DNA of 64,000 bases from Pecten maximus. Lineage: Eukaryota. How positions within the stretch are numbered: position 1 is the stretch's first letter; each line of letters opens with the position of its first letter. Under the pieces are notes generated by a model. The model worked only from the letters and a program-made list of their open reading frames with translations. It did no database searches and had not been told where the DNA came from. The position numbers and the translations under genes are program-made. Shown one piece after another: positions 35,392 to 61,583 of this stretch. The stretch covers positions 25,792,001-25,856,000 of the forward strand of contig NC_047020.1 in assembly GCF_902652985.1 (NCBI RefSeq). The letters run 5' to 3'.

Positions 35392-38300
35392 TCAAACTAT
35401 GAGAACGGAAACAGTTCTCTTTCGTCTATAAGATAACAGAAACCTGAACAAATCGACCACGTCAGACATTACGATGATGAGAATGGGCGTGCCAAGCATT
35501 AAAGCACCTGTGTATCCCATTATCTGTGACGATGTACGGTTGTCCTTGGCTGATATTTTCTTACGGATATGCATAGCCAGTGAACTTTTCTTTAGTACCA
35601 GTTCTCTTTTAAGTTCTTCCAATATCTCTTGCAGTTCTTCCCTTGTGATGTTGATATATTTTGGATTGGGAGATTTTGGACACATACATATTCCGGGGGG
35701 AACATTAGGACACTGTTCCGAATTGTTTATGGTAACAGCTGTCGTCGGAGGCAGAGTTATACATGAAGCTGTCGAAGCAGGATCTGGATGAAGATTAAAA
35801 ACAATATACAGAGAGATGCATGTAGAAAAACACTTAAGTCATTGACAGGAATTATGTTATACTGGAATTTGAATTTGCATAAAGATAAGAAATAATGACG
35901 AAAAGACGAAACCTACATTAAGTAAATAGAAATGAGTCAATGAAACTATTAATATAAACACGAATATGCAACATTATCAACTACATAATGTCATCTTTAT
36001 CTTTTAAAAATATCACAATTATTTGTGGCAAAATACTATAGATATAGCTAGTATGTTTTATTAAACTAAACATGTATAATTCCGATCACTGATTTAAGTA
36101 AACTGCTGCGTGGTGGTAGATACGTAAAACTCCCATCTGTCACCATTATAAAGCAATTCATATCAGATATGTATTGTTATCAGGTTATAAACATGCCATA
36201 ATGTATCATTATACTAATACAAACATGTTTTATAGACGACGTTGCAACAGATCAGCGTGTAACGTTTTATTGAATAACAAACTTTGAGTGGCCATATTTG
36301 ATATTGATTATGCTGTAGGTGTGTGTTTTGTGTTTCCCATGGGCAATCTCTCTCATGATTGGTAATAGTAAACAAATATGCCGTGTGAATGTACATATTT
36401 AAACTTTTAAAATACGGACACATTACAGTGACAGAACGTGACTTCTGGGTCAGCGTCCGGAAACTGTCATCGACTTGCATGTGAACACACCTAATATGTG
36501 CGCACACAAAAGATAAAATAAAGACATATTTGATTACATTTTCTATTGTTTAATTAGACACAAGTTAGATACAAGTAGTGTAATGTTTCTAATGAGAGAT
36601 TTCAAAAATTGTTGTAAGGTGTTAAAGATCGTTTCTTAGCATAGTCATCGATATCACCACAATATACACACGTGTGTTAATTACGTCCTAAAACTTTTGT
36701 TGAAATTCGTGGCCAATGGGCCTTAACCGTCATCTTACTTCCTTCAATTACCCTTGTAAGGTACATTTGTATATACTCAGTAGCAGTAGCTGTACTGACA
36801 ACAATTGTGCAATACTGTATGTTGTCCATGGCGACCAACTTTGCTTTTGACTAGCCCGAAAAATAACAGTACTATTTCAGGAGAATTTCAGCTAAGTAAC
36901 AGCTGAATCCAATGATACATGAAGAAATTCGAATTATGAAAACTTTAGAGAAGGCGCTGCGGACGACTATCGACGATACACATGGTATGTAGGTCTACCT
37001 GGCAAGCTGACCTTAAGAAAATGATGCTAAAATAAAAAGCATACAAATAATATCCGATCATGTTGAACCAGTTGTATTGGGCAATGTTTGATTGTTTTTG
37101 TACCATACATTACATAACATGGCTATATTACATCTAAATATGAGTTCATTAAACAGGACAGCCGCTGATACGCTTTATAAAGATGTGTTCTCGCTTATTT
37201 AAATGTAATTGAAATGTCGCGTATAGATTATATTGAATGCTTCCTATTTTTTCTGGATTTCCTACGTTATGAGCTTTCAGTTTTTGCAAAGTAATATACT
37301 TTAAGAGAAATGATACATACCACATACATACATTAGATGATTCTCTCGGGAAATTAACACCAATATCATACATTTTGTATACATATACAATGCTTCCCTA
37401 CGGGAACCTAAACACCAACATTCTATATACAGTTTTACAATGGAATCCCTACACATAATTCCCTTTTACGGTGATTCCCTAAGGGAATATACACCTGTAA
37501 ATTGATTCCCTGAGTGCACCTATATCTACATTGTAACTCCTCTATTTATTTATACAATTATTATCTCAGGTTACTTATACCTAACTTCTCTATTTATACA
37601 GTGAGTTCCTCAGGAAACTTACACTTAACTCCTCCAATAATACAGTGATTTCCTCAAAAAACCTACACCTTACTTTTCGAAACAGTAATTCCCCGAGGGA
37701 ATCTACACCTAACTAGTCCTCTTTTAATTCATATGGGTGATTTTCGTTGGTTACCTCCACATAACTCCTCTATTTATACAGTGATTCCCCAGATAACCTC
37801 CATCTAACTCCTCTATTTCTACAATGATATCCCCAGATAATCTACACATTACTCCTCTATTTCTACAGTGATATTCCAGATAATCTACACATAACTCCTT
37901 TATTTCTACAGTGATATCCCCAGATAACCTACACATAACTCCTCTATTTCTACAGTGATAGCCCCAGGTAACTTTCACATTACTCCTCTATTTCTACAGT
38001 GATATCCCCAGATAACCTACACATTACTCCTCTATTTCTACAGTGATATCCCCAGATAACCGACACATAACTCCTCTATTTCTACAGTGATATCCCCAGA
38101 TAACCTACACATTACTCCTCTATTTCTACAGTGATATCCCCAGATAACCTACATATCACTCCTCTATTTCTACAGTGATATCCCCAGATAATCTACACAT
38201 TACTCCTCTATTTCTACAGTGATATCCCCAGATAATCTACACATTACTCCTCTATTTCTACAGTGATATCCCCAGATAACCTACACATTACCCCTCTACT

Positions 38301-41300
38301 TCTACAGTGATATCCCCAGATAGCCTACATATCACTCCTCTATTTTTACAGTGATATCCCCAGATAACCTACATATCACTCCTCTATTTCTACAGTGATA
38401 TCCCCAGGTAACTTTCACATTACTCCTCTATTTCTACAGTGATATCCCCAGATAGCCTACACATTACTCCTCTATTTCTACAGTGATATTCCCAGATAGC
38501 CTACACATTACTCCTCTATTTCTACAGTGATATCCCCAGATAACCTACACATTACTCCTCTATTTCTACAGTGATATCCCCAGATAACCTACACATTACT
38601 CCTCTATTTCTACAGTGATATTCCCAGATAACCTACACATTACTCCTCTATTTCTACAGTGATATCCCCAGATAGCCTACATATCACTCCTCTATTTCTA
38701 CAGTGATATCCCCAGATAACCTACACATTACTCCTCTATTTCTACAGTGATATCCCCAGATAACCTACATATCACTCCTCTATTTCTACAGTTATATCCC
38801 CAGATAACCTACACATAACTCCTCTATTTCTACAGTGATATCCCCAGATAACCTACATATCACTCCTCTATTTCTACAGTGATATCCCCAGATAACCTAC
38901 ATATCACTCCTCTATTTCTACAGTGATATCCCCAGATAACCTACATATCACTCCTCTATTTCTACAGAGATATCCCCAGATAACCTACATATCACTCCTC
39001 TATTTCTACAGTGATATCCCCAGATAACCTACACATTACTCCTCTATTTCTACAGTGATATCCCCAGATAACCTACACATTACTCCTCTATTTCTACAGT
39101 GATATCCCCAGATAACCTACATATCACTCCTCTATTTCTACAGTGATATCCCCAGATAACCTACACATTACTCCTCTATTTCTACAGTGATATCCCCAGA
39201 TAACCTACACATTACTCCTCTATTTCTACAGTGATATCCCCAGATAACCTACACATTACTCCTCTATTTCTACAGTGATATCCCCAGATAACCTACACAT
39301 TACTCCTCTATTTCTACAGTGATATCCCCAGATAACCTACACATTACTCCTCTATTTCTACAGTGATATTCCAGATAATCTACACATAACTCCTTTATTT
39401 CTACAGTGATATCCCCAGATAACCTACACATTACTCCTCTATTTCTACAGTGATATCCCCAGATAACCTACACATTACTCCTCTATTTCTACAGTGATAT
39501 TCCAGATAATCTACACATAACTCCTTTATTTCTACAGTGATATCCCCAGATAAGCTACACATTACTCCTCTATTTCTACAGTGATATCCCCAGATAACCT
39601 ACACATTACCCCTCTACTTCTACAGTGATATCCCCAGATAGCCTACACATTACTCCTCTATTTCTACAGTGATATTCCCAGATAGCCTACACATTACTCC
39701 TCTATTTCTACAGTGATATCCCCAGATAACCTACACATTACTCCTCTATTTCTACAGTGATATTCCCAGATAACCTACACATTACTCCTCTATTTCTACA
39801 GTGATATCCCCAGATAGCCTACATATCACTCCTCTATTTCTACAGTGATATCCCCAGATAACCTACATATCACTCCTCTATTTCTACAGTTATATCCCCA
39901 GATAACCTACACATAACTCCTCTATTTCTACAGTGATATCCCCAGATAACCTACACATTACTCCTCTATTTCTACAGTGATATCCCCAGATAACCTACAC
40001 ATTACTCCTCTATTTCTACAGTGATATCCCCAGATAACCTACATATCACTCCTCTATTTCTACAGTGATATCCCCAGATAACCTACACATAACTCCTCTA
40101 TTTCTACAGTGATATCCCCAGATAACCTACATATCACTCCTCTATTTCTACAGTGATATCCCCAGATAACCTACATATCACTCCTCTATTTCTACAGTGA
40201 TATCCCCAGATAACCTACACATTACTCCTCTATTTCTACAGTGATATCCCCAGATAACCTACACATTACTCCTCTATTTCTACAGTGATATTCCAGATAA
40301 CCTACACATTACTCCTCTATTTCTACAGTGATATCCCCAGATAACCTACACATTACTCCTCTATTTCTACAGTGATATCCCCAGATAACCTACACATAAC
40401 TCCTCTATTTCTACAGTGATATCCCCAGATAACCTACACATAACTCCTCTATTTCTACAGTGATATCCCCAGATAACCTACACATAACTCCTCTATTTCT
40501 ACAGTGATATCCCCAGATAACCTACATATCACTCCTCTATTTCTACAGTGATATCCCCAGATAACCTACACATTACTCCTCTATTTCTACAGTGATATCC
40601 CCAGATAACCTACACATTACTCCTCTATTTCTACAGTGATATCCCCAGATAATCTACATATCACTCCTCTATTTCTACAGTGATATCCCCAGATAACCTA
40701 CATATCACTCCTCTATTTCTACAGTGATATCCCCAGATAACCTACACATAACTCCTCTATTTCTACAGTGATATCCCAAGATAATCTACATATCACTCCT
40801 CTATTTCTACAGTGATATCCCCAGATAACCTACATATCACTCCTCTATTTCTACAGTGATATCCCCAGATAACCTACACATAACTCCTCTATTTCTACAG
40901 TGATATCCCCAGATAACCTACACATTACTCCTCTATTTCTACAGTGATATCCCCAGATAACCTACATATCACTCCTCTATTTCTACAGTGATATCCCCAG
41001 ATAACCTACATATCACTCCTCTATTTCTACAGTGATATCCCCAGATAACCTACACATTACTCCTCTATTTCTACAGTGATATCCCCAGATAACCTACACA
41101 TTACTCCTCTATTTCTACAGTGATATCCCCAGATAATCTACACATAACTCCTTTATTTCTACAGTGATATCCCCAGATAACCTACACATTACTCCTCTAT
41201 TTCTACAGTGATATCCCCAGATAACCTACACATTACTCCTCTATTTCTACAGTGATATTCCAGATAATCTACACATAACTCCTTTATTTCTACAGTGATA

Positions 41301-44241
41301 TCCCCAGATAACCTACACATTACCCCTCTACTTCTACAGTGATATCCCCAGATAACCTACACATTACTCCTCTATTTCTACAGTGATATCCCCAGATAAC
41401 CTACATATCACTCCTCTATTTCTACAGTGATATCCCCAGATAACCTACACATTACTCCTCTATTTCTACAGTGATATCCCCAGATAACCTACACATTACT
41501 CCTCTATTTCTACAGTGATATCCCCAGATAACCTACATATCACTCCTCTATTTCTACAGTGATATCCCCAGATAACTTTCACATAACTCCTCTATTTCTA
41601 CAGAGATATCCCCAGATAACTTTCACATTACTCCTCTATTTCTACAGTGATATCCCCAGATAACCTACACATTACTCCTCTATTTCTACAATGATATCCC
41701 CAGATAACCTACACATTACTCCTCTATTTCTACAGTGATATCCCCAGATAACCTACATATCACTCCTCTATTTCTACAATGATATCCCCAGATAACCTAC
41801 ACATTACTCCTCTATTTCTACAGTGATATCCCCAGATAACCTACATATCACTCCTCTATTTCTACAGTGATATCCCCAGATAACCTACATATCACTCTTC
41901 TATTTCTACAGTGATATCCCCAGATAACCTACACATTACTCCTCTATTTCTACAGTGATATCCCCAGATAACCTACACATAACTTCTCTATTTCAACAAC
42001 ACTTAAACGTTTTACGAATTGATAATGATATTGGTAGCCCTCTCATTTGTTTTTGAAAGTCGTGCATAAGGATTTATATTCTAAGACATGTTATAGGATA
42101 TTCATATTTATTTTTAATGATCTAATGTCTCCCATTTGTTTTTGGCTCGATTCGTCTATTTCTATAGATAATATTATGCATACTCTATAAACCCTTCTTG
42201 GTATTCTGAATATATCAGACTGTATTAAAACCCAAAAACATCATCGATCATGAGAAACCATACCCCTAATAAAGGTGATATCACTGATGCCTTAACCCCT
42301 CTCGAAATGGGTGCCACTAATGAGATGGTAAAAACTTCATTTAGGGGAGCATCGATGAGAATCCCCCTCCACCATGCATGCATGCGAAGGCGGTGTCACA
42401 AGGAGGTGCCAGGGAGGTGGTAAGGGTTATATAGGAAGGGAGGTGGCCCAGAACGCTTGACTTGTGTACTACTATGTTAAGTTATATTTCCCAAATATGT
42501 GATACATCTTATTCCTTTATCATGAATTCATTAGCATTAATTTGAATACAGCTTACCAAAAGGACATGATGTATTATATCCAGTCACACATGTGTTAACT
42601 TGATGAGTCCATTCTGTACCTGGAGGACAAGGCTGCTGAATCCAGCCTCCATGGACGCAATGGTAATACGTTGAACTGTCGCATGGGTTGTATTTATAAA
42701 CATACCCGATGCATTTATCTGCAACAAAAGACAATAGATTTGAGACTAGAAACAATCCAGGCGAAAATTACATAAAAAGTAGTTTTATTTGATTAAAGAC
42801 TATAATTACTACCAATCGTTATAGTATTCACCATGACAACGCAGCACAATGTCGTAAGATAACAACACAATACCATGTTTTATTATAAGGAATATACATG
42901 TCATGACAATAGATGTACCCAATAGTCAACAATAGGCCATTTGTTTAAAACGTGTAACTGCAATACACATTATGTTTTTGTTTAATAATCGTGTGTTTCA
43001 GACAATATGAAAACGTGTTTAATAGTTCACGCTTCATATGCTAATACAGGTCACAGTGCAGAATGTGAAAACCGTACCATTGTTATCTATGCAACTAAAG
43101 GCCGCCGAAATGAATGTACCAAGTGTGAGAATCCAATACATGTCCTGAAACAAATGAATAACATTCAAAGTATAATTACAATTTTGTATAAAGAACAACA
43201 ACTCAAATTCACACGTTGTTTTTTTTGTGAGTAAGGGTGTGTGACAGACAAAAAGCCACTTCCGAAATGGGACCGTCGCGCTTTTTCCAGCACTTGTGAC
43301 ATTACAAACGATTTTTTGTTTGTTTTACTTAATTTTGTTCCTTTATTTATATTTTATTTTCGTTTTTAATGCGTCGTAGACCGTTCTGAGCGGTTATATT
43401 TGTCATTTGCGTTCGACGCTGTCGGACGATAAACCTTCCACAACTAAGGGAGATGGAAGGCTAACCATAGGACCGCTGGAGGCATGCTTCAGCTTAATGT
43501 GTGGTGAGTGAAGGCTGTGGTGGAGCAGTTGGCGGACGATACACGTTCAGAAAATAATGTGTCGTCATATCTTGACGAATTATTGACACAAACATAATCT
43601 ATATTAGGTTAATCTAAGTGATCCCCTCGTTTTTCAAACTCCTGAAAGAGCAAATGTAGACAATATTTCTTTCGATATCTTAGCTAATATTAAGGTCGAT
43701 AGACCGATATGTTTTTGTCATCCCGGACCTATATGCAGACAACGATGTCTTGTCAAAGGACATAACCACGAAAGTGCAGACCGGTCCGATTCTAAGTTGC
43801 CCGAGAAACACAAACCGCCCTGGGTAGGTGAAATGTCGAACCACACACTCTGGAACTTCGTCTGAGGTTAAGGGGCCGGCACTCTAGCGCGGCCCTGAAG
43901 CATGGTGTAGCACGACTTGGGTTTTCTGATTGTTTGTCAAGCATAGCATTTAAGCATTCTATTAACAATTAACAAATTCGAAATGCATTTGTTTCCAGTT
44001 AAATACCATATCCATTTAATCCGTTGATGTTCACTCGTAAATATAGTGCTCGTGAAATATAAAATAATGTTGAATCAATTAGCTATTCATTATAAGTTTG
44101 ATTAAATACTTTGTAATGCAATCAAACTAAGGATAACACAAAATACAACTCTTAACTCATCAAAACAAGCAGCAATGTTATAATACTCACCATGGCCATC
44201 AGTACCCTCCAGTGAAGTATGTTAATACTCACCATGGCCAT
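35392..44241 (-). CDS. Membrane-anchored chitin-binding (CBM14/peritrophin-A-like) protein, paralogue A (short stalk)
   Basis: Exons 44241-44233 (ATG GCC ATG; duplicate copy at 44199-44191), 43144-43078 (signal peptide DMYWILTLGTFISAAFSC), 42718-42557 (6-Cys domain, YYHCVHGGWIQQPCPPGTEW), 35783-35392 (stalk, CMC, SAKDNRTSS, TM, stop). Phases 0,1,1 are consistent; about 209 aa. Confidence 0.82.
37750..41995. repeat. 44-bp satellite array, about 96 copies, in intron 3 of paralogue A
   Basis: Unit CAGTGATATCCCCAGATAACCTACACATTACTCCTCTATTTCTA (period confirmed: 660 bp = 15 units); degenerate copies extend left to about 37390. Confidence 0.98.
43690..43900 (-). mobile_element. SINE relic
   Basis: Reverse complement gives tRNA-like TAGAGTGCCGG...GGTTCGAC followed by TGTCCTTTGACAAGACA, as in the other SINE bodies. 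Confidence 0.45.
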
Positions 44242-44274
44242 CACTACCCTCCAGTGAAGTATGTGGCGGGAATG

Positions 44275-44288
44275 TCAGCGTTATACTC
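44275..44288 (-). promoter_or_regulatory. TATA-like core promoter motif of paralogue A
   Basis: GAGTATAACGCTGA on the - strand about 40 nt upstream of the first donor; 13/14 identical to the motif upstream of paralogue B. Confidence 0.45.
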
Positions 44289-45478
44289 ATACATATTCCT
44301 GGTACTTACCAATTTAATCAATTCGCTCATGTTACAGAGAAAAATTATTGTTATACACCAGGCTTGGCCTATTATTCAAATGCAGGTAACAATAAATTAT
44401 GTATAGTGCTGTGCTATGTTTCCTGATACTGTGTTACGCAATATTTATGATCGAGCACATGATAGTTCTGCTCACGTTTTCATATAACGGTATTGATGTT
44501 AATCAATCAATGGATGTAATAAATCGTAAAATTTTATAAAATGCTTTATCTAAAACGTATTCCGATTGATAGGAATATCATCATAGAATGATACACGTTC
44601 GTTGTATACACATATCTGCTGTGTTTAGGTTGACAAGTAACCATGAAAATAAATACAGCGAATTATGTTGAAATACTATCATATTATTTGTTCACGAGGT
44701 ACCCACACATATTTGGACTTCAATGTGTTGTTGAAACATATGTAGCTTAACACAAGGAAGGAGAGTACCCACGGATATGACTTATTGTACATTTATTCTT
44801 TAGAATGAAAACAATGGCGACGGGCGATTTTTAATGAATACAATCCGAAAACGTGTCATTTTGCCTCCACTGTAATAAAACTCTCTTCAAATTTATGGCA
44901 AGTGCTTATCCCCCTCCCTTTTACAAATCAATTTGTTATTTGACATGTTACCTCCATGTTGTAGAGCTCTGTTTGCTGCATTGACTCATTCTAAACGCGT
45001 GTACCAAATAAAAACCAGCAATACAAATGTGTGGCGATAAATTGGCTCACTTTTTTAGGAGTGGCCGCAATTATTTTATTTTATTTTCATTCTTTTATGT
45101 TGATAATGATAATTGAAAAGATTTTGATTATTAATAGTATTTCTTTGAATTCTTTGTATGAATAACACCTTATACAGCAAAGGTGAGCGGAAGATAGATT
45201 AGTCCGCCAAAATGACAATATATAAATGATATATATTGTCATCCGAAACGTGTCATTTTAAGCTGAAGAAGTGTTTAAAAATGAACATAACAATTCTCTA
45301 CATCCGTGGTGATGATGATGAGTCATATACATCAAGCAGTATCAATACACAGCAGACATTTTTCATTAATACATCCTTCAATAATAACTTTTTGACAACA
45401 AATAATATATAAGTGTGAAAGGTGAAAGGCAGAAGAGCAAATTAAAATGATTTCAACTTTAAATAGCGGGAAGTAAAT

Positions 45479-45508
<30 letters not shown>
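45479..45508. repeat. Poly-G tract
   Basis: About 30 G. Confidence 0.95.
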
Positions 45509-45511
<3 letters not shown>

Positions 45512-46379
45512 GATCATACCCTTTAGCCACTTTTGAAATAAACCTTTATGCATATTTGTACAAATATCATTCCAATATACATGTATATAATGTATTTTAG
45601 ATTTGAATTAGATTTGACTTTATATGTATATCCTAGGTTGATAAGTCATATACTTGATCGGATGCATATCAAAAACAAAAATGCATGAAAAAAATGGAAG
45701 CCATACAGACAACCAGCATATGCTGATTATCAATTATTGTATTCTAGATTTTTGCCGTAAAACATGCATACATAATTTATCGACGATGCTAAATTCTGTA
45801 AATTAACCGTCGGTACATTGATTGTAATTGATATATATTGATTTTACTGGTGAAACGTGACATTTGTCTTCATTTTTCGGTTTACGTGGGCATATCACTA
45901 TCACGTGCTGACATATGTCACTCTAGAAAAAGGATATTCGGTTTGTTTGTTTATTTTTTATTTTTTATTTTTTTATTTTTTTATCTTTATTTTGATTTTT
46001 GATTTTTGTCAAGCTGAAAGTATTTTAGTGAACGACTTATCGCATCACCCTTTAGGTAAGGGCATGCTTTTAGTTTTCCTCACACAAATGAAAGCGCAAT
46101 AAGTATTTTCAAATACAAAAATAAGTACACCTTCGTTCTTTTTTTTTTTTTTTTTTGCTTCGCATCTTACTAAATATGTTATTTTAAGACGAAATATTAT
46201 ATGTAAAGAAATGATATTAATAATACAACATTAATATAGCGCACTATCTAATTTGTATTCACAATACATAAGTTAAACAATGTACAGAATATAAATAACC
46301 TATATCGACTAGAACATTTAGATAATACATGTGTACATGACGTCATCAAGAGACTCCAAAAAGCACATAAACAAGTGAG

Positions 46380-47030: not shown

Positions 47031-47199
47031 GTTGTCACTTACACTTCTTTTTAACATTGACGATCTAATGTTGATAGCAATTATTATGTCTGTTCTCGTT
47101 AATTATTCACATAATACAGTTTTACACATCACAAGAATATAAATTGAATGAAATGACATACTATAGGAATGGCTTCGAGGAAATACCACCCACCAGATA

Positions 47200-50100
47200 T
47201 CACAATGGGAAAACAACTCGAATTCGCCTGAACGCTAAAAAATACGTGAATAAATCAACCAAGTCAAACATTACAATGATGATAATGGGCGTGGTCAACA
47301 GAGTGGCCCCTGTGTATCCCATTATCTTTGACGTTATACGATTGTCTTTGGCTGACAGTTTCCGACGAATATGTGTCGCTAATAAAGTCTTGTTTAATAA
47401 CAGATCTTTTTTAATTGCTTTCACGATATTGGTCAATTCTTCCTTTGTGATGTTAGCATACTTCTGATGGACAGGTAGGCATGGACACATAGGTTTGGTG
47501 GTAAAAATAGAAAAATGTGAAGTAGTCACTAGGGCACTGTTTAGAGTAACGTCCGAAGAAATGTCTAGTGTAATGTCTCGTGAAGTGTCTGGGGTTATGT
47601 CTGGTGTAGTGTCGCGTAATATGTCAGGAGTAGTGTCTTGTGTAGTGTCTGCAGAAATGGTTCGATAAGTGTCTGGGGAAGTGTCTAGTGCAGTGCCGGA
47701 GGTGTTCATTGTAGTGTCTAAAGAAGTGTCTAGAGTAGCGTCTAGGGTGATGCCAAGAGTACTGTCTGGAGAATTATCTAGAGTATTGTAGGAAGAAGTG
47801 TCTAGATTATTGTCTGTAGAAGTCTCTAGAATAGTGTTCGGTGTAGTGTATATAGTAGTATCTGGAGATGTGTCTGAAGAAGTGTCCGGGGAAGTGTCAA
47901 TAGTAGTATCTGGAGATATGTCTGAAGTAGTGTCCGGGGAAGTGTCTATAGTAGTATCTGGAGATGTGTCTGAAGTAGTGCCCGGGGAAGTGTCTATAGT
48001 AGTATCTGGAGATGTGTCTGAAGTAGTGTCCGAGGAAGTGTCTATAGTAGTATCTGGAGATGTGTCTGAAGTAGTGCCCGGAGAAGTACTAGGAGCAACA
48101 TCTAGAGGAGTGTCTAAAGTAGGGAATTTAGTAGTTCGTAAAATATTGTATTGATAAGTGTATGGAGCAGTGGCTGGTGAAGTGTCTGGATAAGCATCTA
48201 GAGTAGTATGTCTTTTAACAGCCGACGTTGGTGGCGCAGCTCCAGGTGTAGTACTCGATGCAGAACCTGGATGAAAATTATAGGGATTGTTTTAATGAAA
48301 AATAAATAAATAAAAGCTTCATGTATTTACAAGGAAATCAGAAATACATAGAATATATAACATTGAGATTTATATAAATTGATGAAGTTTTGATAATATT
48401 TTAATAATTTTAACAATATATGTATATGTATAATCAGTGCAGCTAAGAAATAGCAATGTCAGTTTATGACATTTATTTATGTTTAAGTGTAGTTACAAAT
48501 ATATTTTCCACAAAACTATTACATAGTTATAGATATAAAATACAAATTAGAAATATATTTTTGAATGAGTCCAGTCCCTAACCTGAAGTTATAGCTATCT
48601 TCGTCACTACAAACAAAAAGCTCTGTATTATTCTAAGAACTGTTACCCGTATTGGAGAAGTATACTGCTAATTGATAGGTATTGCATTACAGGCATTATA
48701 TCATGTTTTCACATTTTTTTTTGCCATTTCGTCTTCGTGAATTGGATCACTTACAAGTCAATATCAATGTCCTTTATCTATATTCGAAGATTAATTGAAA
48801 AGTAAAAAGGAGCGAGTACTTCGAAATGAAAATGTATCTCTTCATAATTTAACAACTCGCTCATATTCAGTATAACATTCCTTCTCCCACACCTAAGATA
48901 TACATTACCCTACACGACTGTTAATTACCATAAGGACACGCCGTATTGAATGAAGATCCAGGAATAACACACGATAATATGCTTTGACTCCACTTAGTAC
49001 CTACAGGACATGGCTTGGTCAACCATTTGCCAGCACTGTTACATAGGAAAAAAGTCGAAAGATTGCTCGGGTTACATTTAAAATCACCAGCATCGCAAAC
49101 GCCTAAAAACAAAAAACAAAAACAAAAACTACTGATTGGGTAGTTAGAATAATCAACGTCCAATTTAACATTAATGATCGCAATATCATAAAGATAGTAT
49201 TTTCTCTAATGTAATTGGAAATATATGAAGTACCACCTGTAAAACATGACTCGGATTATTATTCCGATAGTTATTACAATAAACTTATTTTCGTCTCGTA
49301 AGTCTTTAGGAATTCACTTTCGTTTTATTATTTGAAAATGCACTTTTCTAACTTAAACCCAATGAGTTTAGGCGAGGAAGAGCTCAAGTATTGATGTTTT
49401 CTGCCCGTCCTCGTTTTATTATTTGAAAATGCAAGCTCAAAATTGATTCATATCTTAGAAGGTGACTTGCTAGAGATTTCCATCCAATGTATCCGTTGGG
49501 TGTCGTCGGTGAAGCAGAAACGTGCAACCTTCCGGAACAACTAGTCTTAATCCCCTTGTGGTCTTTAGTTTCTCTGCATAATTTATTCTTTTGATATTTT
49601 TTTCCCCGTTTCATCGAATAAGAGATTGAGCCACGATCCACTTTCATTGATTGACGACATACATAAACTATAACATACCAAGCCTATGACACTTATAAAT
49701 TATGGACCTATGGTGGAGTTAAAATGGCGTTATACCGACCGGGTCGAAGTCGCCCGATGTTATTTGCGAAAGGGTGGAATCGCACTATATTTATCTTGAT
49801 GACATGAAATTCACACTGGGGCATTATGACGTCTCAATGCGTATTAGGCCATAAACGCAATATTAAATCGATGTTTCTAAAAAAAGAAATAACAAGTCCA
49901 TGTCTTAAAATATTAATCCCCATATGACCATATTTGACAAATAAGATTTTAAAATGTCGGATCAAAGCTAATATAACGAATGCTGCAATGTACAATATAA
50001 GATGACACGGGCAGCCTAACAAGACAACCGATGATAACATACACAAACTTTGATGACGTCACACAATCCATGCTGTCTTTAAAACATGTTACGTATGGAT

Positions 50101-52211
50101 TTGTGCACATCAAGGCAATTGACGGAACAGTGACATTTAGCTAATTAAACCACCTACTTTGTATATTTGTATTGTTTGTTTGTTTGCTTGGAGTATCGCC
50201 CCGTCAACAGCCAGGATCATTTTGAAACGGGGTCAACTTTGTAGTAGTTGGTGACTACCTCATTTAACAACATACAGGAGGCCCGTCGCATGCCACTTAG
50301 GTAAAGTGAAGTGTCTTGCCCAATGATACAACCAGGACAGCACGAACCGGCCTGTTTCTCAACTTGAGAAACACTAACCACTTCAGATTAAGAGCGTCGA
50401 ACTACGAACCTCGGATCTTCGACACCAAGGTTACGTGGCCGTAAGCATCTTGTTATTTTTTTTATAGTAACATCCTGTAAATATCAATTATAGTACCACG
50501 TGTAGATAGAGAGTGTTTCTGGCAGTGATAAATACGTTGTGTTCAATACACATACTAAACCGTATACACAAGCCACGCCACATGATTTTGAGACATGGTA
50601 TAGGGATCAAACTTACTCGAGACTTTGCCTTGTGTCATCCAAATGCTTGTGCACAGGGTAAGAATCCAAAACAAGTCCTGAAACATACGGTTAAGATGCA
50701 TACCGTAATTGTTGAATGCTATTTATTAAATGAAAAGAGAGAGCATGCACTGCATTGAACTTTCAAACGATTGCAATATATATTTAAGTTTCAATACTTT
50801 TAAACAATATTTTGATGACTGATAATTATTCATTCTTTTATTATTACCTGAGCACAGAAAACCACACGGTTGTGTATATACAAATAAATGTACATTCTTA
50901 CTGAGATTGAGTTGTATATGCCTTTATATCACAGCAACGTAACCGGCTCAAAGCGGTTTAAAAATTGCCGTCTCAATCAAATTTTTTTTGTCGTAAAGAG
51001 GCAGTCGAATTAATCTCCCAGACAAGAGGAAACAGATTATCAATGAAAGTCAGTTTGAAAATTATTTAACAAACTTCTAGGGGTACCGACTACTTACCAC
51101 TAAAATATCCAAATTGTTCATGCTAACAAATTATATAATCACTGCAAATGCTGTTAAAAAAATTTAATCGGCATGTGCAATCTTGAAATTATGTGTTTCT
51201 GTCTCGATGGCACTTTCTGCTTATTAATTTATTATTATTCATTCTATAAAAGTGATATTTTTCACTAGTGAAAAAATATCACTTTTGCTGATTTGACCAA
51301 TCAAATTAATGATTAGAAAATACCAAAATAATTGACCAATCAGAAAGCCCGACATATGTCAGCACCTGGACAGGGGAAACTACTTTTTTTGTTTACAAAT
51401 TATCGCTGTAGGCCTAGTTAGCATACGGGGTAGGTTTTTCGTTGATAAAAAATTTAATAAACAGAATAATTTAACAGTGTCTTCAGTAATACCAAATATA
51501 TTTCACTCGTGTGGCTAATATTTTGATATTTTTCACTCGTGCTGTGCACTCGTGAAAAATATCAAAATATTAGCCCCACTAGTGAAATATATTTGGTACT
51601 ACTGAAGACACTGTTAGATATCCTCTATTTTTTGTGACGGAAAAAAAAACAAAAAAAAACGCTATGAATACGCCTCAAATGGTTGTACCAAAGAAACACA
51701 AGGCATCTTTAAGTACAGATTGACAGCTAGAAACGAAACATTATAGCAAACATGAATTAGACTGTATCATACAGCTGATTCGTCCTTCTAGGATTCGTCA
51801 GTGACACCAAAGGCCTAAAGTGTTGTTACCTAGGAGACAACTTAAAAATACAGAACTAAATGTAAAAGTCTAGATATGGAGGTGAAATGGTCACATAATT
51901 GATAACATTTCATAATTCTCAATATTGGGATATAAGGAATGAAGGAAATTTAACGTTTTTGCTTTTTTACTTTCAAATACATACATAGTTCATTACCACA
52001 ACATATTCATGGAACCTTTAGATATATATTATTAACGCCAATAAAATAAGATATTTAACTGAATTCAATTCTATTTAATTTGGAGGTGACCTTCCAAAAC
52101 GCGTCATGTAGTGCAGATTAAGAAATAAATGCGAATTATTTGTCAAACAATTGTATCTTAAGTAAATTGTCTATTTAAAGCATCACCTCATTAGAATGCT
52201 GTACTCACCAT
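47200..52211 (-). CDS. Membrane-anchored chitin-binding (CBM14-like) mucin-stalk protein, paralogue B
   Basis: Exons 52211-52209 (ATG|gtgagt), 50677-50617 (signal peptide DLFWILTLCTSIWMTQG), 49102-48929 (6-Cys domain, FFLCNSAGKWLTKPCPVGTKW), 48266-47200 (open frame checked by hand: DT(T/S)(P/S) repeats, CPC, SAKDNRITS, TM). About 434 aa. Confidence 0.85.
50174..50445 (-). mobile_element. tRNA-derived SINE, same family as 17174-17371
   Basis: Reverse complement shares GAGG.AGTCACCAACT...TTCAAAATGA.CCTG.CTGTTGA and the (CAAA)n tail. Confidence 0.7.
51241..51628 (+). mobile_element. Non-autonomous element with a terminal hairpin (CACTCGTG core, ATATCCTCTAT end)
   Basis: Hairpin about 51472-51616; related, internally deleted copy at 63296-63618. 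Confidence 0.72.
51764..51807 (-). ncRNA. Type I minimal hammerhead ribozyme-like motif, two core-adjacent substitutions
   Basis: Minus strand GTGTCA-CTGACGA-ATCCT-AGA-AGGAC-GAAT-CAGCTG-TA-TGATAC; 6-bp stem I, stem II, palindromic stem III. Confidence 0.55.
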
Positions 52212-52258
52212 TGCATCTGTCCCTTCCTAGATGTGATGTGTATTAGAAAGTCCAAGAA

Positions 52259-52272
52259 TCAGCCTTATACTC
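52259..52272 (-). promoter_or_regulatory. TATA-like core promoter motif of paralogue B
   Basis: GAGTATAAGGCTGA on the - strand about 50 nt upstream of ATG|GT; shared with paralogue A. Confidence 0.45.
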
Positions 52273-54860
52273 CTACTACCCAAGATGATTTAATCAACCT
52301 ACATTTAGATCATGTCACAGTACAACGTTGGGGTATACATAGGTTGACCCTCTTATTCAGTTTCTAAAAACAAAATGCATAAACTTTTCGATATTTTCCG
52401 ATACTTTGGCACATAAAACGATAAAATGTAATGGAGTAACATATATTCGTGCTCAGCTCAATCTCGAAGTGATGCAATCAAAAAGATGGCACAACCAGCT
52501 AAGCAGATCAATATGAAGCGATTGTATTTTGGAAAGCCTTCCATATGTTCTTCGCTTATTCGTCATTTTTTCTGAAATTCCATTATATGTATTCGTTTTT
52601 GCCCCCACTCGTTCACTGTTTTTGTTTAGTCAATTAATAATTAAGAATAGGCGCATGTTCCACCAAAAAAATGGAAGTTTTGCTTGACATAAACCAAATA
52701 ATGACGAAATTTTCATTCCTGATGTCATATATAATCTCCGTATACGTTAAAAGGAAAACACTTGGAAATAATTTTCATATAATGCTTCTTATTATTTTCG
52801 AAGATGTTGTCAACTCCATGAATTCCTCTGTATAAAAGTAATTAGCTTCGGATTTCTCGTCTTTATGATTGATGTACAAATCTGGAAATCAATTTCTAGC
52901 AATTTATTCTTCCAAGGTTTCCTGGCTCATCCTTTTGTAGTTTACATCTTATCGATTAAAGACGGAATCATGATGGGAAAACTTGTTTTCTAAAGAGAGT
53001 CGCCCTTTGTGTGCTGGGATTATCATCGTAATCTTCTTATTCAAGTAAGGTTGATTCCGTACGTCCAGTTTATTAGTTTTACTCATAAATTCAATGTTAT
53101 TACCTCAGTTCCACTAGAAACGTTGATATGCATGAGAAACCTTTCATTGCGTCCTATCTGTATCAGTTATTTTTACCCTACAAATCGGAGTTTAATTAAT
53201 TGAAATCAGCTTTGCAATTCGCATTTAATTCAGACATAAGCTTTTCAGCAATAGTTTGTGATATATATATACATGTGTTCATATCATTCTTATTGCATGA
53301 TAGGAATGTAAAACTAATAATGTTAATAATATCCACTTAATACTATTAAATAGGGTTTTTAAAAACCAATTCATCAATATATCGAAGTTATGTCTGGTTG
53401 AAAAATCTTTTGGATTTTCTTCATTCGATACGAATACTCCGATGTTATAGTAATGATGATAATACAGCGACTGTATTTGTTAAGTATTGGTTTAAAATTA
53501 GCACTGCAAATGTTAACTATTAACCTTTCAAACGATCAGAGGTACAATTTAGCAAGCACAAGTTATCTTAAATAGAGCAGTTTTCTCACATCCGATTGAA
53601 ACTCCCGTCTAAACAAACATTGTTCGAAGTAATGCTAAATGTTGACCAATCATAGGCTTCCGTTCAAATTACCATTACTAGTGCTTTTATACCCCACGAA
53701 ATTTGCTTGATGTTGTAGGACAACATTGTTTGATCCAATGTAAAACATGAATCATTGCACCACGCCAATCGATCAATGAATCCGATATAATTTCAATCAA
53801 TTAAAGTATTAGCAAAGCTTCGAGTGTAATATCATTTTTAATTAACCAACCAATTTTCTGTCACTAAAAATCTAAAAATATCAACAGCAGTAAAATATAA
53901 ATATTTACACATCACAAAATATATAAAGCTCATTTTTCTGTCCATGTATATTAAGCACATGAAGTAAATAGCGAAATAAACACGGTGCAGCTCTGACAAT
54001 ATATTGAGCGAGATGTGATACGTTAAAAAAAACTGCACATCACCTTTTGTTTTGTGTCACCTAAGAAGACTTCTATCATAATATGAGTCAAAGCTTTGGT
54101 ACTGCGCAAAACAATATTCACAGATATTTGAAATTGTTTTTAATGGATATGTTCAAGGCTGAAATATGAGAAATGCACATATCATCTCCTCGGTGACATA
54201 CATGGACATTGTGTTGATATCATTAACATGACTGTTTATTAATCCCTTTTACATTTCTAAAATTACCGATGAATGATAAATTATGGATTTTTAACTTCCT
54301 CGTTTACAGTGGATTTCTAAATTAAAGAATTCTTATGATCCTTGTTTCAATGCAGACTCGGCCCGTTATCCAGATAAGTCTTTGTCAAAACTTTCAAGTA
54401 CCATCTTTACTTTATTGTGATACTGTATAATGAAATGAATGTATGTCTTTTTATGAATTTACGAAGCTTTTGAACGAATTATGAACATGTGCTCCTTAAG
54501 ACTTCTCTCCTATCAAAAATTATTCACTTTCTTGATTATCATCCTTATTTTGATTCGACAAGATCGCCCAACAGACTATTGACATAGATACGTGAACAAC
54601 ATGTACCCCTCTCTTACGACTTTATTGAAGAACTTATCAGAAGAGGTAACATAGTCCATGCAAAAGCAATGATGTTCCTTGATATGAAGTAAGATGCGTT
54701 CGATGATTATAGATATGAAGTAAGACACAGTTGATGATCGTTGATATGAAGTTCGTCGATGAAACAAAAGACGCTTATTCTTCCGAAACACACGGTCCAA
54801 TACAATTTATATTCTTAGCATTTCTGTCACCGTTTTATCTGATTTGATAAAGTATTTCGT

Positions 54861-57800
54861 TTAAAATGTCAGTATTCTGGTCAGGTCAGCGACCAAAGCA
54901 AGAAGTAAGGGTAAAATGACAACCAATACAAATGCATAACCAATGGTCTGTGAAGACATGCGTGAGTCGTCAGCACATGCTTGCCTCCGACGTGTTGAAG
55001 ACAGTAATTTCGCATTCAAAATCAATCGGTTTCTCATATGACGCAGTAACATTTGAAATGACACATGGTTGGCGTTGAAATACCCCGTTCCTATGCAGTT
55101 ACATGAACACATATTTCTAATGTAAACTATGTCAGTATTGTTCGGTGTGGAAACGGTAACTGTAGATGACCTGTTATCAGATATCGCCGTTACTGTTGTT
55201 CCATGATCAGACGCGACTGTTGCTTCAGTGTCAAAGGTCGCTGTTGTTCCAGGGAGAGATGTGACTGTTGTTTCAGTGTCAAATGTCATTGTTGATCTAG
55301 GGTCAGATGTCACTGTTGCTTCAGTGTCAATGGTCGCTGTTGTTCCAGGGAGAGATGTGACTGTTGTTTCAGTGTCAAATGTCATTGTTGATCTAGGGTC
55401 AGATGTCACTGTTGATCCATGATCAGATGTCACTGTTGCTTCAGTGTCAAAGGTCGCTGTTGTTCCAGGGTCAGATTGCATTGTTGATTTAGTTTCAGAT
55501 GTCACTGTTGATCTAGGGTCAGAGGTCACTGTTGATCCAGTGTCAGATGTCACTGTTGATCCAGTGTCAGATGTCACTGTTGTTCCAGGGTCAGATGTCA
55601 CTGTTGATCCAGTGTCAAATGTCACGGTTGATCCAGGGTCATATGTCACGGTTGATCCAGGGTCATATGTCACGGTTGATCCAGGGTCAGATGTCACTGT
55701 TGATCCAGGGTCATATGTCACGGTTGATCCAGGGTCAGATGTCAATATTGATCCAGGGTAAGATGGCATTGTTGTTTCAGGTTCAGATGTCATTGTTGTT
55801 CCAGGTTCAGATGTCATTCTTGTTGTAGGGTCAGATGGCATTCTTGTTCCAGGGTCAGATGTCACTGTTGATTCCGTGTCCGATGTCTTTGTTGACTCAG
55901 TGTCAGATGTCACTGTTGATCCCGTGTTCGATGTCTTTGTTGACTCAGTGTCAGATGTCACTGTTGATCCCGTGTTCGATGTCTTTGTTGACTCAGTGTC
56001 AGATGATGCTATTTTTCCTGTCCCAGACATCGTTGTTGCTTCTGTAATATATGATACCGATCATATGCTATTTAATATTTTGAAGTGATTGCAATTATTT
56101 CATTTACTCAAGTTTTTCTTTTACACAATGTGTATTTATGGTATGAGTGTGTCCGGTTCAGTGTTCCATTTAACTATTGCCCAATATACAACAGATATAC
56201 ATATGTATATATGTAAATGAACTTGTATCCAAATTTGTATGATATATTCTTCTAATATTGCGTTGTAGAGATTACAAATTTACGAGTTATTCATCAAAAT
56301 GTAAAGCGCCAGTCTGATCGGTATAGAATAATATAGTCATATTACAAAAGGTAAATTATAGGCGTGTTTGAAATCTCACCGTTGGATCCATCCACGTCAC
56401 AAATTACATGTGAATCTGGAGGGACACAAGCGACTAGTGAGAGGTTAAAAATAAAACCAGGAGTACTGCATGTTCTTTCATATCTCACGCCATTGTTGCA
56501 CCTGTAGAATTTATGTGGATCACTGTCATGGCATTCATAGGTGCCTTCAGTACATTCTTCTTCGCCTGTGCCATAAAATATGACTATTTCAAATACATTT
56601 ATCGGCAAAATTGTATAATTTATAGGATAAATTTGCTATAACATTTTTTTACTGTCACGACGTAGGTTTTTCAAAATGGAATTGTATGGAAATGGATACA
56701 CCCGTGTTGTTGACGTTCCGAGTGACACCAACATATCCTGTATCAGTGAAATTAAACGCGTGAGTCTTAGCCCTACGTTGTTGAAATAAGATGTTGCTAC
56801 CGTTTCATTAAAATGATTACGATTACGAACCATTCGTTGTACATTTGTTATGTTTTGTTTTGATGATACATACAAGACTACCGATACCACTGCATATACT
56901 GCATATACATAAATATATATGTAATACATATCGAGAATCACGAGAGCGGGACGTGGTCCGTTTTGGTTCGCCATGATCAATGCAAATCTTCCTTCCGTTT
57001 AGTCTATTTTATCATCAAATTTTATTTCGTTCGACTCCAACCCAAGATTAATCGACCTTTCCATGATGACACCCTTCCCCAATCCAGTCATGCCAAAGTT
57101 GTTTCCCGGTAAATTCACAAAACGTGCTCAGGTTGATGAACTTGAGCGAACGTAGTAAGAGAAGTCCGTGGTCAAAGGCTAGAGGTCAACCAATCAGAAT
57201 TATTGGAGGTCAGAAATTACCAATCGGAGCCTTTAAAAGTGGTTACCTACCGCGACGTGTTGGCAATAACACTCTTTCACGAATTTTATCACGTGCCTTA
57301 TCAGTTGTAAAACAAGCGAGAGAGAATCTAGGCATATGTTTTCGCTCCCGACTTCATAGAATACAGAAGAAAAAGAAAAATAAACATTTCAGGAAGGAAA
57401 ACCTTTTTTTTCTTACTTGAATCAGATTGGCAAGCTACGTAGGAAGGGAAATCTTCCCGGTTGCATGCAGAAATTGAGGTATCCCATACCAAGCCTCCCG
57501 CGCACGATCTACTAAACCAAGCACCATTGAGGCACACGAAATATTTCTGAGGATCATCCACATCACACCGGAAATCGATTCCACTACAACCATTGGCTAA
57601 AACAAAATATACAGACAAAATACATCTCAATAGAATGTTAACTCAGTTATGCTGAAATATCAATACAACGGTTTTATGGAATATGAGTTTGATTACAGAT
57701 TAGATATAATAGCGATAAAACCAAACAATGAAATATCAACAAAACCAGACAATGAGATATCAATAAAATCATACAATGGGATATCAATAAAACAATTCAA

Positions 57801-60800
57801 TAAAACCATACATTGGGATGTGAATAAAACCATACAATGAAATATCAATAAAACTATACATTGGGATATCAATAAAACCATGCAATGAAATATCAAAGAA
57901 ACCATACAATGGAATATATTAAAAAAAAAAACATAAAATAGAATATTAATGAAACCACACAATGAAATATCAATAAAACCATACATTGGGATATTAATAA
58001 AAACATTCAATAAAAAGAAATACAATAGAATATAAAAAAAACCCCATACATTTGGATATCAATAAAACCATATAATTAAATATTACTGAAACAATGAAAT
58101 ATCGATAAGACCTTACAATGTAATGTCAATAAAACCTTACAATGAAACATCAATAAGACCATGAAATGGGAGGGACCAACCAACCAATTGTTTTCCCATA
58201 GACTTTAGTGTTAACGTTTTGGAGTACATTATCTTTTTTTTTGTATTTCATTCAAATTCTTGAATTCAATATGACAATTACTGTTTATAACAAAAGTTTA
58301 GGGTCTGATATAACACATAATCAAAAAAAAAGTTGGGTCCTTCAGCTCAAATTTTCTCCAGGGTAGCCATTTTGAAAAGGGGTGAATTTCGCACTAAAAA
58401 TTCTCAAAAATCTTAATTGTTTACCTGTTAATTATTATTACCTGAACTTTTGGGAAAATTCAATCGGACTTACGATATTTATATCGACATTTCTTATTGA
58501 TAGTTACCTATCAGGCTACATATCTATTTTCTCACTTCATAACATACTGGCCAATCAGTGGCTGCCAGACATTTTATCCTTGGCTCAACTTTCTATACAC
58601 AGGGGCTGTTTCAAAAATATTTTTTTTTCAATTGGTTGGTTGTTCCCTATAAATGAAACCATACAATAGAATATCAATAAAACCATACAATGAAATATAA
58701 ATGAAACCATACAATGGAATTTGGAAAAATAAACAAGCAATGGAATATAAATGAAACCACGCAATGAAATACAAACAAGAAATATCTTTAAAAAGATAAA
58801 CGGCATAGTTTTAATGCTGGCGGTTATAATGTTAGACTGCTGGTGAAATAAATTAACGAACTAAATTAAATGCGTTTCAGCACGGATAACAAAATTATAT
58901 CAGTTTGAATCATTTTTAGTGATAATAAGACTGCATTTGAATCAGGAACATAATTTTATTGATTCAGCTTGCATTCAATCTTAACCTTTTTTCGTTTTTA
59001 ATTGCATATCTGCATTTTGCATTTAGCGCTACATTGACCAATCACATACTTCATCTTGACCAGTAACGCCACCTGTCGCGTCATATCCGGGACCAAGAGA
59101 ATATTATACGGCTATGCTTAAACATACTGGAACCTCTAGATTGGCAGTGGCTGAGTCAGTAGATTGCCCAAAGGACAATAAAGTGTCCATGCTTTCTCAC
59201 AGTGACAAGTGTGCCCGTGTGTTTACCGGGCTCAAAAATCCTATGGGTCAGTGAGACATTGTTGACGACTATTTCAGTGCTGGTGAGGTGATCAGGAAAC
59301 GGTTTGTTTGGAAGATGATTAATTGCTTACTGTCAGCGTAGAGCATCTGAGGAGATCAAGTTGCCTGAAGACGTGGCGGAGGGAGGAGGCAATATCACAG
59401 CAGTTGTTGCTATGACAGTTACCTTGTCGTATGATAGAATATGAGTATTCCATGGTGTCGACTGGATGGTTGGTTGGTTTTGGCGATGCTGTGTGTATGA
59501 CATTCTGGGTATCCTAAATGTATCATCCAATGACTGTTTTGGTGTAGTGAACGGTCTCTGCCTTCTCGAGACCGTCCTCAAGATGTTTGGACGGTGTTCC
59601 GATGTATGATTGGTGTTGCACCAAGTCAGATAGTCGGAAAGTTACCTGACTCCTTCTGGAATCGAATGTTTTTGCGTGGTGCCACTGTTTACTATGGTGT
59701 AGGGATCGATGATGGAACATCGGATTGACGGAGAGCATAGTTTCTTCTGCTGAATGAGGGTCAGTGTCCTGTCGGTCGTTCTCGTATAGATAGGGACTGG
59801 TGTCGACTTCACAGGGGGCCTGCCCTACAGGTAGGGCGTAAGAATTGTACCTGCTGCCCCCATTGCATGATCGTAAGAGGCGACTAAACTTGGGATCTTA
59901 TCTTTTCTCTTCTTTCTTAACAACTTTCTTCTTCCTAATGTCTCCCTTGACAATGCCTCACTTTTGGCCTTTAGTTGAGCGTTCGCCCCTGTGAGGCACC
60001 CATAATGTTGATATCGTTTTGCCAGTGCTGGTCATGGTCCTATGGTGAATCGGGGAGAAACACTCCTGCTGGGGAAAGTTGACGGATGGTCTGCATTCCT
60101 TCAGAGGACTAGTTATTCGATGGATGGTTTCCCGTGCTGTGCGGCTACATGGCTACATGTCGGTTATGGGCCGACTGTTCGGGGACGCCATCCGAGGTTC
60201 GGCGATATGCTCAGTTGGCTCCATCGTTGCTGACATGGGTCAACGCTCTGCTCAGTTCGTGAGCGGCCGTTGAGTTCCTACTACGAGAGAGGTTGATACA
60301 TTTTTTAAGTTTTTCATGCAATGACATTGGGGTTGAACTTATTGTTACGATCCAACTGCAGATGTTGGTGCTTATAGCGTATTCCATTAAGACGGGGAGG
60401 TGTGTTGTGAATGTACGTTACGAGCTGACTTCTCTAAGCGAACGTGTTTATGTCACCTCCTCCCGAATGTGATGGTCGGCCGTGCGTGACTACAATCGTC
60501 GTAGTCTACACCTGGTCAAGCTTGTGCACGGATGTATTGACGTACCTCACTAGCGTCATCGCAGACTACACCTGCCATTGTCGGCAATATAGATATTGAG
60601 TATATAGCATTGCATACAATGAAATATCAATAAGACCATTCAATTAAATATCAATAAAACCATACAATGGGTATCAAGAAAACAATACAATGGAATATAA
60701 AGAAAATCATACAAAGTGATATCAATAAAACCATGAAATGGAAAATCAATACATTTTCGTAGTTGAAAACGATTAAACTCTATATCATGGAAAATGATTG

Positions 60801-61583
60801 CAATTTTACAGTAAAAATGTATAATGTCAATTAAACTATAGAATGAAATTTCAATGAATTAATTTGTATAAGGAAATATTGTTATATCTTTGTAGAGGAA
60901 CATATTCACATCTTTTATGTGTATCTTTATATGGACAATACTATTAACTATCATATCCTGGTTAACACACATTATATATATCGCCTTCATAGTGTCATAA
61001 AGTCGTAAGTGGCAGTTAAGACTTATTTTGAGATTCTGTTCCATATCCTGAAAGGCCTTAGCTTCTCTACCACGTGTAAAAAGGTCGTATCTGTAGTCTG
61101 ACAATGTATTGAAATATTCAACTCGGTTTTATTGCTAAGAACCAGATTGTAGTGTAATAATAATAGCCTTGTATTTTACCGAGATTTTCAATGCTTTCTT
61201 TCTCTAGTCACACGTGTACTTGAAATCAAATATTATGAGAATATTGCACCTCCCCACCTAGATTTTGAAATTTCTTTCGACCGATTTTAGTCGCTAATTC
61301 CAACGAATCGACACTTCAAGCATACATCACTGGCGAGTCCTATAATGACGAAACATATGCATTTTAATTCATTTCTTGCTCTTCTATATCGAATTCTGTA
61401 TATAAAGGTGATAATATATTATTTGTCTTTTATAAATCTTTACATTTATGTACTTACTACATTTCTTCGATATTTGTACACATAACATGAACGCATATTA
61501 CATGTGAAAACGTATAAAAAGTACTTACCTTGCGAATGCAATAATATGATGGCAATACACAATCCGTTAATCAGGAAGTAAGC
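54861..61583 (-). CDS. Membrane-anchored mucin-stalk protein with two CBM14-like domains, paralogue C; ATG exon not fixed
   Basis: Exons 61583-61529 (signal-like AYFLINGLCIAIILLHSQ, phase 0 start), 57596-57417 and 56565-56380 (two 6-Cys domains), 56041-54861 (SDPGSTVT repeats, CSCNC, CADDSRMSS, TM, stop). Candidate start exons: ATG GTA CAG|gtaaca near 62150, or ATG|gtaact at 63780-63778. Confidence 0.82.
58171..58648. mobile_element. MITE with 20-bp TIRs
   Basis: AGGGACCAACCAACCAATTG / CAATTGGTTGGTTGTTCCCT. Confidence 0.8.
59260..59740 (-). mobile_element. Degraded Penelope-like element, GIY-YIG endonuclease region
   Basis: Across a frameshift: SQVTFRL...SYIGTPSKHLEDGLEK...TNHPVD/WNTHILSYDK, resembling PLE VVYKI..YIGET.R.L..RL.EH..H.IDW.N..IL. 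Confidence 0.5.

Follow-up and report, generated by a model that had tools for sequence, protein, structure and literature searches.

Arthropod CBM14 proteins of the peritrophic matrix and cuticle are secreted and usually carry several CBM14 repeats, and to our knowledge peritrophin-type chitin-binding domains have nearly always been described in secreted matrix proteins. Here we describe three genes, A, B, and C, whose exons all lie on the minus strand of a 64,000-nucleotide window of the Pecten maximus genome (contig NC_047020.1, positions 25,792,001 to 25,856,000; coordinates below are those of the window). Read from the sequence, each gene would encode one or two N-terminal CBM14 heads, a stalk of variable length, a conserved juxtamembrane segment (the cassette), and a membrane helix, an architecture in which we have high confidence. 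The products are probably type I, mucin-stalked, chitin-binding surface glycoproteins that form the CBM14 branch of a large, uncharacterized, receptor-like superfamily of molluscs; chitin itself has about an even chance of being the ligand of the predicted heads.

Peritrophins and invertebrate intestinal mucins resemble the three genes in combining six-Cys CBM14 domains with Thr/Ser/Pro-rich, mucin-like segments and a signal peptide. A, B, and C differ from them in carrying no more than two heads each and in having, at the C terminus, a juxtamembrane cassette specific to molluscs and a membrane helix; the secreted peritrophin and mucin class has no membrane anchor, whereas the terminal exons of all three genes encode a strongly hydrophobic 19-residue window (mean Kyte-Doolittle value, 1.97 to 2.82) followed by a short tail. 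The molluscan shell-matrix proteins Pif and BMSP combine a VWA domain, CBM14, and an acidic mineral-binding part (PMC11291548). They are likewise molluscan and likewise join CBM14 to a strongly acidic repetitive region; however, no VWA domain was detected in the scanned exons of A, B, and C, which are predicted to be membrane anchored rather than embedded in a matrix. Vertebrate membrane-tethered mucins and stalked lectin receptors are similar in their type I organization, variable-repeat stalk of the O-glycosylation type, binding or barrier ectodomain, and short tail, but neither SEA nor another Pfam juxtamembrane domain occurs in A, B, and C, and there is no homology.

Clusters of polymorphic single-pass TM1 genes control schistosome resistance in Biomphalaria (GRC/PTC1 and PTC2) (PMC7494358, PMC13712769); their products are reported to contain no known domains and to have no homology outside gastropods, and they are proposed to act in recognition (PMC7494358). 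Compared by description only, they share with our locus the molluscan tandem arrangement, small type I proteins, a variable ectodomain, one membrane helix, and the absence of any recognized cytoplasmic domain. Whereas the homology reported for the TM1 genes stays within gastropods, the cassette occurs in four molluscan classes, with one match in the planorbid snail Bulinus truncatus. Other cassette proteins of P. maximus, such as XP_033743910.1 (“secretory phospholipase A2 receptor-like”), follow the same cassette and stalk logic, and some of them are encoded on the same chromosome-scale contig, but they carry different heads. What is new is the combination of CBM14 with a lineage-specific membrane cassette; the pairing of CBM14 with mucin-like or acidic segments and the tethering of mucins are each already known. 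A membrane-anchored CBM14 protein would be a candidate for the means by which a molluscan epithelium or blood cell holds or senses chitin, be it in the shell or periostracum framework, the gastric shield, the gill rods, fungi, or chitinous prey or parasites. Defining the cassette as a family would also improve the annotation of mollusc genomes and give immunology and biomineralization research a handle on surface lectin-like receptors.

Gene models and CBM14 heads

The exons of the three genes are as follows.

43078..43141, minus strand: gene A signal exon, coding part; ATG at 43141-43139, encodes MYWILTLGTFISAAFSCIDNN, phase-1 donor
42557..42718, minus strand: gene A CBM14 exon; Pfam CBM_14 29.1 bits, phase 1 on both sides, six Cys
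35392..35783, minus strand: gene A terminal exon; 32-residue Pro/Thr linker, CxC, NIT sequon, helix, RKK, SAKDNRTSS, membrane helix, Asp, basic tail, stop
50617..50701, minus strand: gene B signal exon; encodes MHLNRMFQDLFWILTLCTSIWMTQGKVS, phase-1 donor gtaagt, ATGs at 50701 and 50686
48929..49102, minus strand: gene B CBM14 exon; Pfam CBM_14 22.2 bits, GT/AG borders, phase 1 on both sides, six Cys
47200..48266, minus strand: gene B terminal exon; 259-residue acidic Thr/Ser/Asp/Pro stalk of 8- and 16-residue repeats, then cassette, membrane helix, stop
57417..57596, minus strand: gene C first CBM14 exon (C1); Pfam CBM_14 32.4 bits, 3' end fixed by a contig
56380..56565, minus strand: gene C second CBM14 exon (C2); Pfam CBM_14 28.0 bits, intact, phase 1 on both sides
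54861..56041, minus strand: gene C terminal exon; 310-residue Thr/Ser/Asp stalk of 8-residue repeats, divergent cassette, membrane helix, 8-residue tail, stop

Every predicted intron is bounded by GT..AG, and every domain exon is in phase 1 at both ends. The four six-Cys exons had been taken for CBM14 domains in the first-pass annotation, and all four indeed score above the gathering cut-off of Pfam CBM_14 (PF01607; 22.1 bits), the exons of B and C having been searched singly, each on its own. A six-frame CBM14 scan of the P. maximus genome (918,306,378 bases in 3,983 contigs) at E<=0.01 missed the B exon. Among solved structures, a profile built from the four exons matched the CBM14 domain of chitotriosidase (6so0, E 4.9e-6; also 5hbf), the mite allergen Der p 23 (4zce, E 1.3e-5), and the CBM14 domains of insect and mite chitinases. 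Five Cys columns are invariant in the alignment of the four exons and the remaining Cys is present in all four; all four also keep a G-x-x-W/F motif and, ahead of the third Cys, an aromatic pair (YY, FF, YF, or FY). As the ligand-binding part of the protein, the N-terminal CBM14 head would bind chitin or a chitin-like glycan.

The exons of gene A encode residues 1-21, 23-75, and 77-205 of RefSeq protein XP_033743182.1 (uncharacterized protein LOC117329368, P. maximus), and both split codons encode Asp, in agreement with that entry; a word-indexed protein search with XP_033743182.1 returned only the protein itself, a result that is uninformative about absence. A tiny separate ATG exon had been proposed for A and B. 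The annotated start of A is the ATG within its signal exon, so that no short upstream exon is needed, and in B the in-frame ATGs are contiguous with the signal exon. A 25-nt stretch of the B signal exon is 92% identical to that of A, and the acceptor ttcatccag precedes the terminal exon in both genes. Another candidate signal for B, directly upstream of its CBM14 exon (49189-49111), was rejected, as the implied intron would measure only about 30 nt. The common exon plan once ascribed to all three genes describes A and B and fits C only in part. The membrane-tethered, chitin-binding type of protein itself held up, as judged from the predicted CBM14 head, mucin-like stalk, single hydrophobic helix, and short tail, together with a putative signal peptide in A and B.

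Four public runs, drawn from three studies and guessed to be RNA, supplied contigs that were mapped on 54700-60600. These contigs cover the terminal exon of gene C, and in run X2 one spliced contig of depth 3 connects 57417 with 56041 across a GT..AG intron, in phase 1 and in frame. The supposed junction between CBM14 exon and membrane exon is therefore real in gene C, where it links C1 to the terminal exon. This joint bypasses C2; depth is zero over 56079-56866, an interval covering C2, in all four runs. C2 is either a cassette exon in the splicing sense or disused.

The three genes had been called co-oriented paralogues. They do share the minus strand, and A and B are close: the nearest genome relative of the A CBM14 exon is that of B (41% identity, E 6.7e-7), and their cassettes are 57 to 59% identical (E 3.2e-27 for B against A). 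Gene C, on the other hand, is very divergent; its cassette is 26 to 28% identical to those of A and B (E 4.8e-5 against A) and no nearer to them than to many unlinked copies, and C1, searched against the genome at E<=0.001, found itself alone. In a maximum-likelihood tree of 25 cassettes, A, B, C, and OWF44967.1 of Mizuhopecten yessoensis fall on one side of a branch with support of 76/97, the branch of C measuring 4.35 changes per column. From these comparisons a common local origin is plausible, with A and B appearing as recent duplicates and C as an old, fast-evolving one. OWF44967.1 starts MYSTNCFPQPDP, and its N-terminus YSTNCFPQPDP resembles the junction between CBM14 exon and stalk in A, which hints that the CBM14-cassette combination is present in a second scallop genus. 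By eye, none of the other cassette exons among the genome matches listed, whose numbers are lower bounds, was preceded on its strand by a CBM14 exon.

The juxtamembrane cassette

The cassette was originally noted as a conserved module of three paralogues; it is instead a pan-molluscan element found under many ectodomains. Its order is CxC(xC), an NxT sequon, an amphipathic helix, a short basic helix, an S-A-x-D-x-R-x-S loop, a long membrane helix with an invariant Gly at its start and an invariant Asp at its end, and a tail. An alignment of 24 copies gives the consensus CxCxC ... NxT-EEL..I..LK.EL.V.K..LSS..RK.ISA.D.R.S...IG.VG...L......IV..D, in which Leu, Arg, Asp, Arg, Gly, and Asp are invariant and Cys and Ser residues nearly so. 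All six invariant residues are present in each of A, B, and C; in C, a Cys replaces the nearly invariant Ser and the NxT sequon is gone.

The last 95 residues of A match at least 150 places in the genome (247 candidates), each at the end of an open frame and many in tandem clusters. Thirty of these loci were read, and Thr/Ser-rich runs in frame are followed by the same motif order. Dozens of cassette terminal exons form dense tandem clusters on contig C17 (0.87-3.98 Mb and 19.67-19.75 Mb), and five near-identical ones stand in tandem on contig C8 (39.52-39.82 Mb); these clusters look like rapidly duplicating receptor-like gene arrays.

Searched against 1.84 billion cluster representatives, the cassette profile matched 2,772 at E<=1e-3, of which 1,858 reach E<=1e-10; nearly all of the matches lie at the C terminus. 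Thirty matches were looked up, and every one of the 29 that could be named comes from a mollusc. The sources include scallops, oysters, mussels, a freshwater mussel, gastropods (Lottia, Bulinus, and Batillaria), a cuttlefish, and a chiton, that is, four classes (bivalves, gastropods, a cephalopod, and a chiton). Their source names are “uncharacterized” or borrowed (“integumentary mucin C.1-like,” “secretory phospholipase A2 receptor-like,” “serine-rich adhesin”). Pfam searches of the 77 longer matches found Lectin_C most commonly (20 of 77), along with IgGFc_binding, Ephrin_rec_like, TSP_1, WSC, F5/8C, EGF, Ig, and PAN; CBM_14 occurs in a single one of the 77, the product of gene A.

In these longer matches the cassette itself falls outside every Pfam model, and the Pfam scan of the A, B, and C terminal exons gave nothing beyond low-complexity noise. 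Look-alikes in the ESM Atlas are unnamed molluscan clusters without Pfam families, the cassette profile produced only chance matches among PDB sequences (E>0.1), and Foldseek found nothing in the PDB for the cassette model. A literature search on cassette motif strings returned no molluscan paper, several of the string matches being in work on MUC1 peptide vaccines, and we found no paper on the cassette or on a membrane-bound peritrophin or stalked lectin of such architecture in molluscs. The cassette is a shared molluscan exon placed under many glycan-binding or adhesive heads, most often C-type lectins; since the exon is common to so many heads, the locus would represent the chitin-binding branch of a large family for surface recognition or adhesion.

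An AlphaFold2 model of the A terminal exon, based on a 122-row alignment (mean pLDDT, 81.6), contains an amphipathic helix (residues 49-63), a short basic helix (71-80), and a long helix (85-129) crossing the membrane and extending into the tail, with a disordered stalk. An extracellular cassette in a type I protein would fit the NxT sequon before helix 1, the signal peptide, and the disulfide-rich head. The signal peptide identified in A and B should send the N terminus out of the cell, and the repeat stalk, strongly acidic and rich in Thr and Ser, probably bears O-linked glycans and adopts an extended form. Across 148 family members, the tail behind the invariant Asp measures 20.5 residues at the median and contains no domain, so that the proteins would either serve as plain tethers between the cell and a chitinous matrix or particle or signal via a partner. 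A C-terminal PDZ ligand was considered and rejected, since the final positions are occupied mainly by Lys or by a mixture of residues.

The invariant Asp at the inner end of the helix, together with the invariant Arg and the Asp-x-Arg predicted to lie outside, are candidate contact or processing sites. A bolder proposal, which we regard as speculative and on balance unlikely, is that the cassette constitutes an undescribed, mollusc-wide, three-helix receptor module whose invariant residues link hundreds of different glycan-binding heads in each genome with one shared partner or one shared step of processing. If so, molluscs would build a recognition repertoire by shuffling phase-1 domain exons onto one signaling or shedding cassette, and A, B, and C would be its chitin sensors.

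Stalk length, shedding, and the state of gene C

The stalk lengths given in the first-pass annotation agree with those measured, 32 residues in A, 259 in B, and 310 in C, and the presence of such a range in three adjacent genes had suggested a molecular ruler, in which three anchors hold the CBM14 head at set distances from the membrane that increase step by step. The stalks of B and C are composed of 42 to 47% Thr plus Ser and 9 to 15% Asp (net charge, –32 in B and –29 in C), and a tandem-repeat search resolves them into units of 12, 24, and 48 nt in B and 24 nt in C (33.9 copies). The consensus units of B and C, compared by eye, have the same period and a similar composition but little common sequence. 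In the C stalk, one contig of run X2 is shorter than the assembly by 96 nt, i.e., four 24-nt repeats (55880-55977), a difference that reflects either individual variation in repeat number or assembly collapse, and across the genome the open frames ending in the same cassette range from 55 to 771 residues. Because unstable repeats yield lengths of this kind, graded stalks need no design, and because A and B are no more than distant relatives of C, the three do not form a matched set; the differences in length are probably a by-product of repeat instability, and a designed ruler is highly improbable. A transient anchor is a further alternative: the proteins might be pro-forms of secreted chitin-binding mucins, cut at the basic cluster (R-K/R-K/R) to free a CBM14-stalk ectodomain destined for mucus, gut lining, or shell matrix. 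All 24 aligned copies have a nearly invariant Arg within a di- or tribasic cluster about 15 residues outside the membrane, and an acidic Thr/Ser/Asp stalk joined to a chitin-binding domain is reminiscent of shell-matrix and peritrophic proteins. However, most copies of the cluster do not conform to the canonical furin site (R-x-K/R-R), the cluster lies inside the confidently modeled short helix 71-80, and the S-A-x-D-x-R-x-S motif, Gly, and Asp that follow it are conserved more strongly, which would be odd for a leftover stub; we consider such shedding doubtful.

Several observations weigh against reading the locus as three membrane-tethered chitin-binding proteins. The CBM14 scores are modest, that of B exceeding the cut-off by 0.1 bit, and the first two Cys are atypically spaced, the second being early and shifted by three residues in A. 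The gene B model is a prediction from the sequence, and the RNA nature of the runs mapped over C is a guess. No annotated protein turned up for either gene, in a word-indexed search with the cassette region for B and in a terminal-exon word search swamped by low-complexity words for C, both of which are uninformative about absence. The grouping of C with A and B is not strongly supported, and either adhesion or sensing would fit the proteins. Further points concern gene C: the reading frame lacks an ATG anywhere from the stop at 57643-57645 to the first Cys, no convincing signal exon emerged from DNA similarity to A and B or from a scan for hydrophobic open reading frames, and the lost NxT sequon, 8-residue tail, and very long branch suggest that the gene may be decaying. 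Only A, and perhaps B, might then be working, with C a transcribed copy from which no CBM14 membrane protein is translated. The unused C2, the Cys in place of Ser in the S-A-x-D motif, and the contigs of runs X1 and X7 (57481-57628 and 57607-57754) that read unspliced across the predicted acceptor at 57597 point the same way. Against decay, the terminal exon of C stays open for 392 codons through 34 repeats, its six invariant cassette residues are retained, as are the six Cys in both C1 and C2, and the splice from C1 to the terminal exon is in frame and used. The 5' border of C1 is uncertain, with an open frame extending upstream to at least 57642 and contigs to 57754; this frame encodes the signal-like LLRCILSVYFVLANG, and because this hydrophobic run precedes the first Cys, a short upstream ATG exon would complete the gene. 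We regard decay of C as rather unlikely.

In the intron between C1 and C2 of gene C, a joint at 57070-57279 skips 208 nt with non-canonical AC..TC borders (plus strand) in all four runs at a depth of 45 to 67; an indel allele, or a repeat copy located elsewhere, is the probable explanation. Upstream of the gene, 58049-59230 and 59822-60018 reach contig depths of 10^3 to 10^4 with many variants in all four runs and represent a very abundant or multi-copy repeat. Minisatellites of 24 nt whose consensus units resemble one another occur repeatedly, at 57715-58162, 58648-58775, and 60613-60751.

Other features of the window

The last intron of gene A is 6,773 nt long and is mostly filled by the following array, which has a GC skew of about –0.62 to –0.65, an extreme strand bias.

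37753..41998, no strand assigned: 44-bp tandem array from the tandem-repeat search; 96.6 copies, 94% matches, non-coding

At the other end of the window, a run of N occupies 4564-4699, and exons with Sushi/CCP repeats (Pfam 34.6, 42.8, and 17.3 bits) lie at 5137-6645 on the plus strand. Downstream of them is a pair of near-identical Cys-rich exons (9468-9815 and 10196-10552) with no Pfam match. At 12856-13876, also on the plus strand, a long open frame of a tandem peptide repeat (GRFIFYKDNLL...) is GC poor with strong positive GC skew and is probably a minisatellite rather than a gene.

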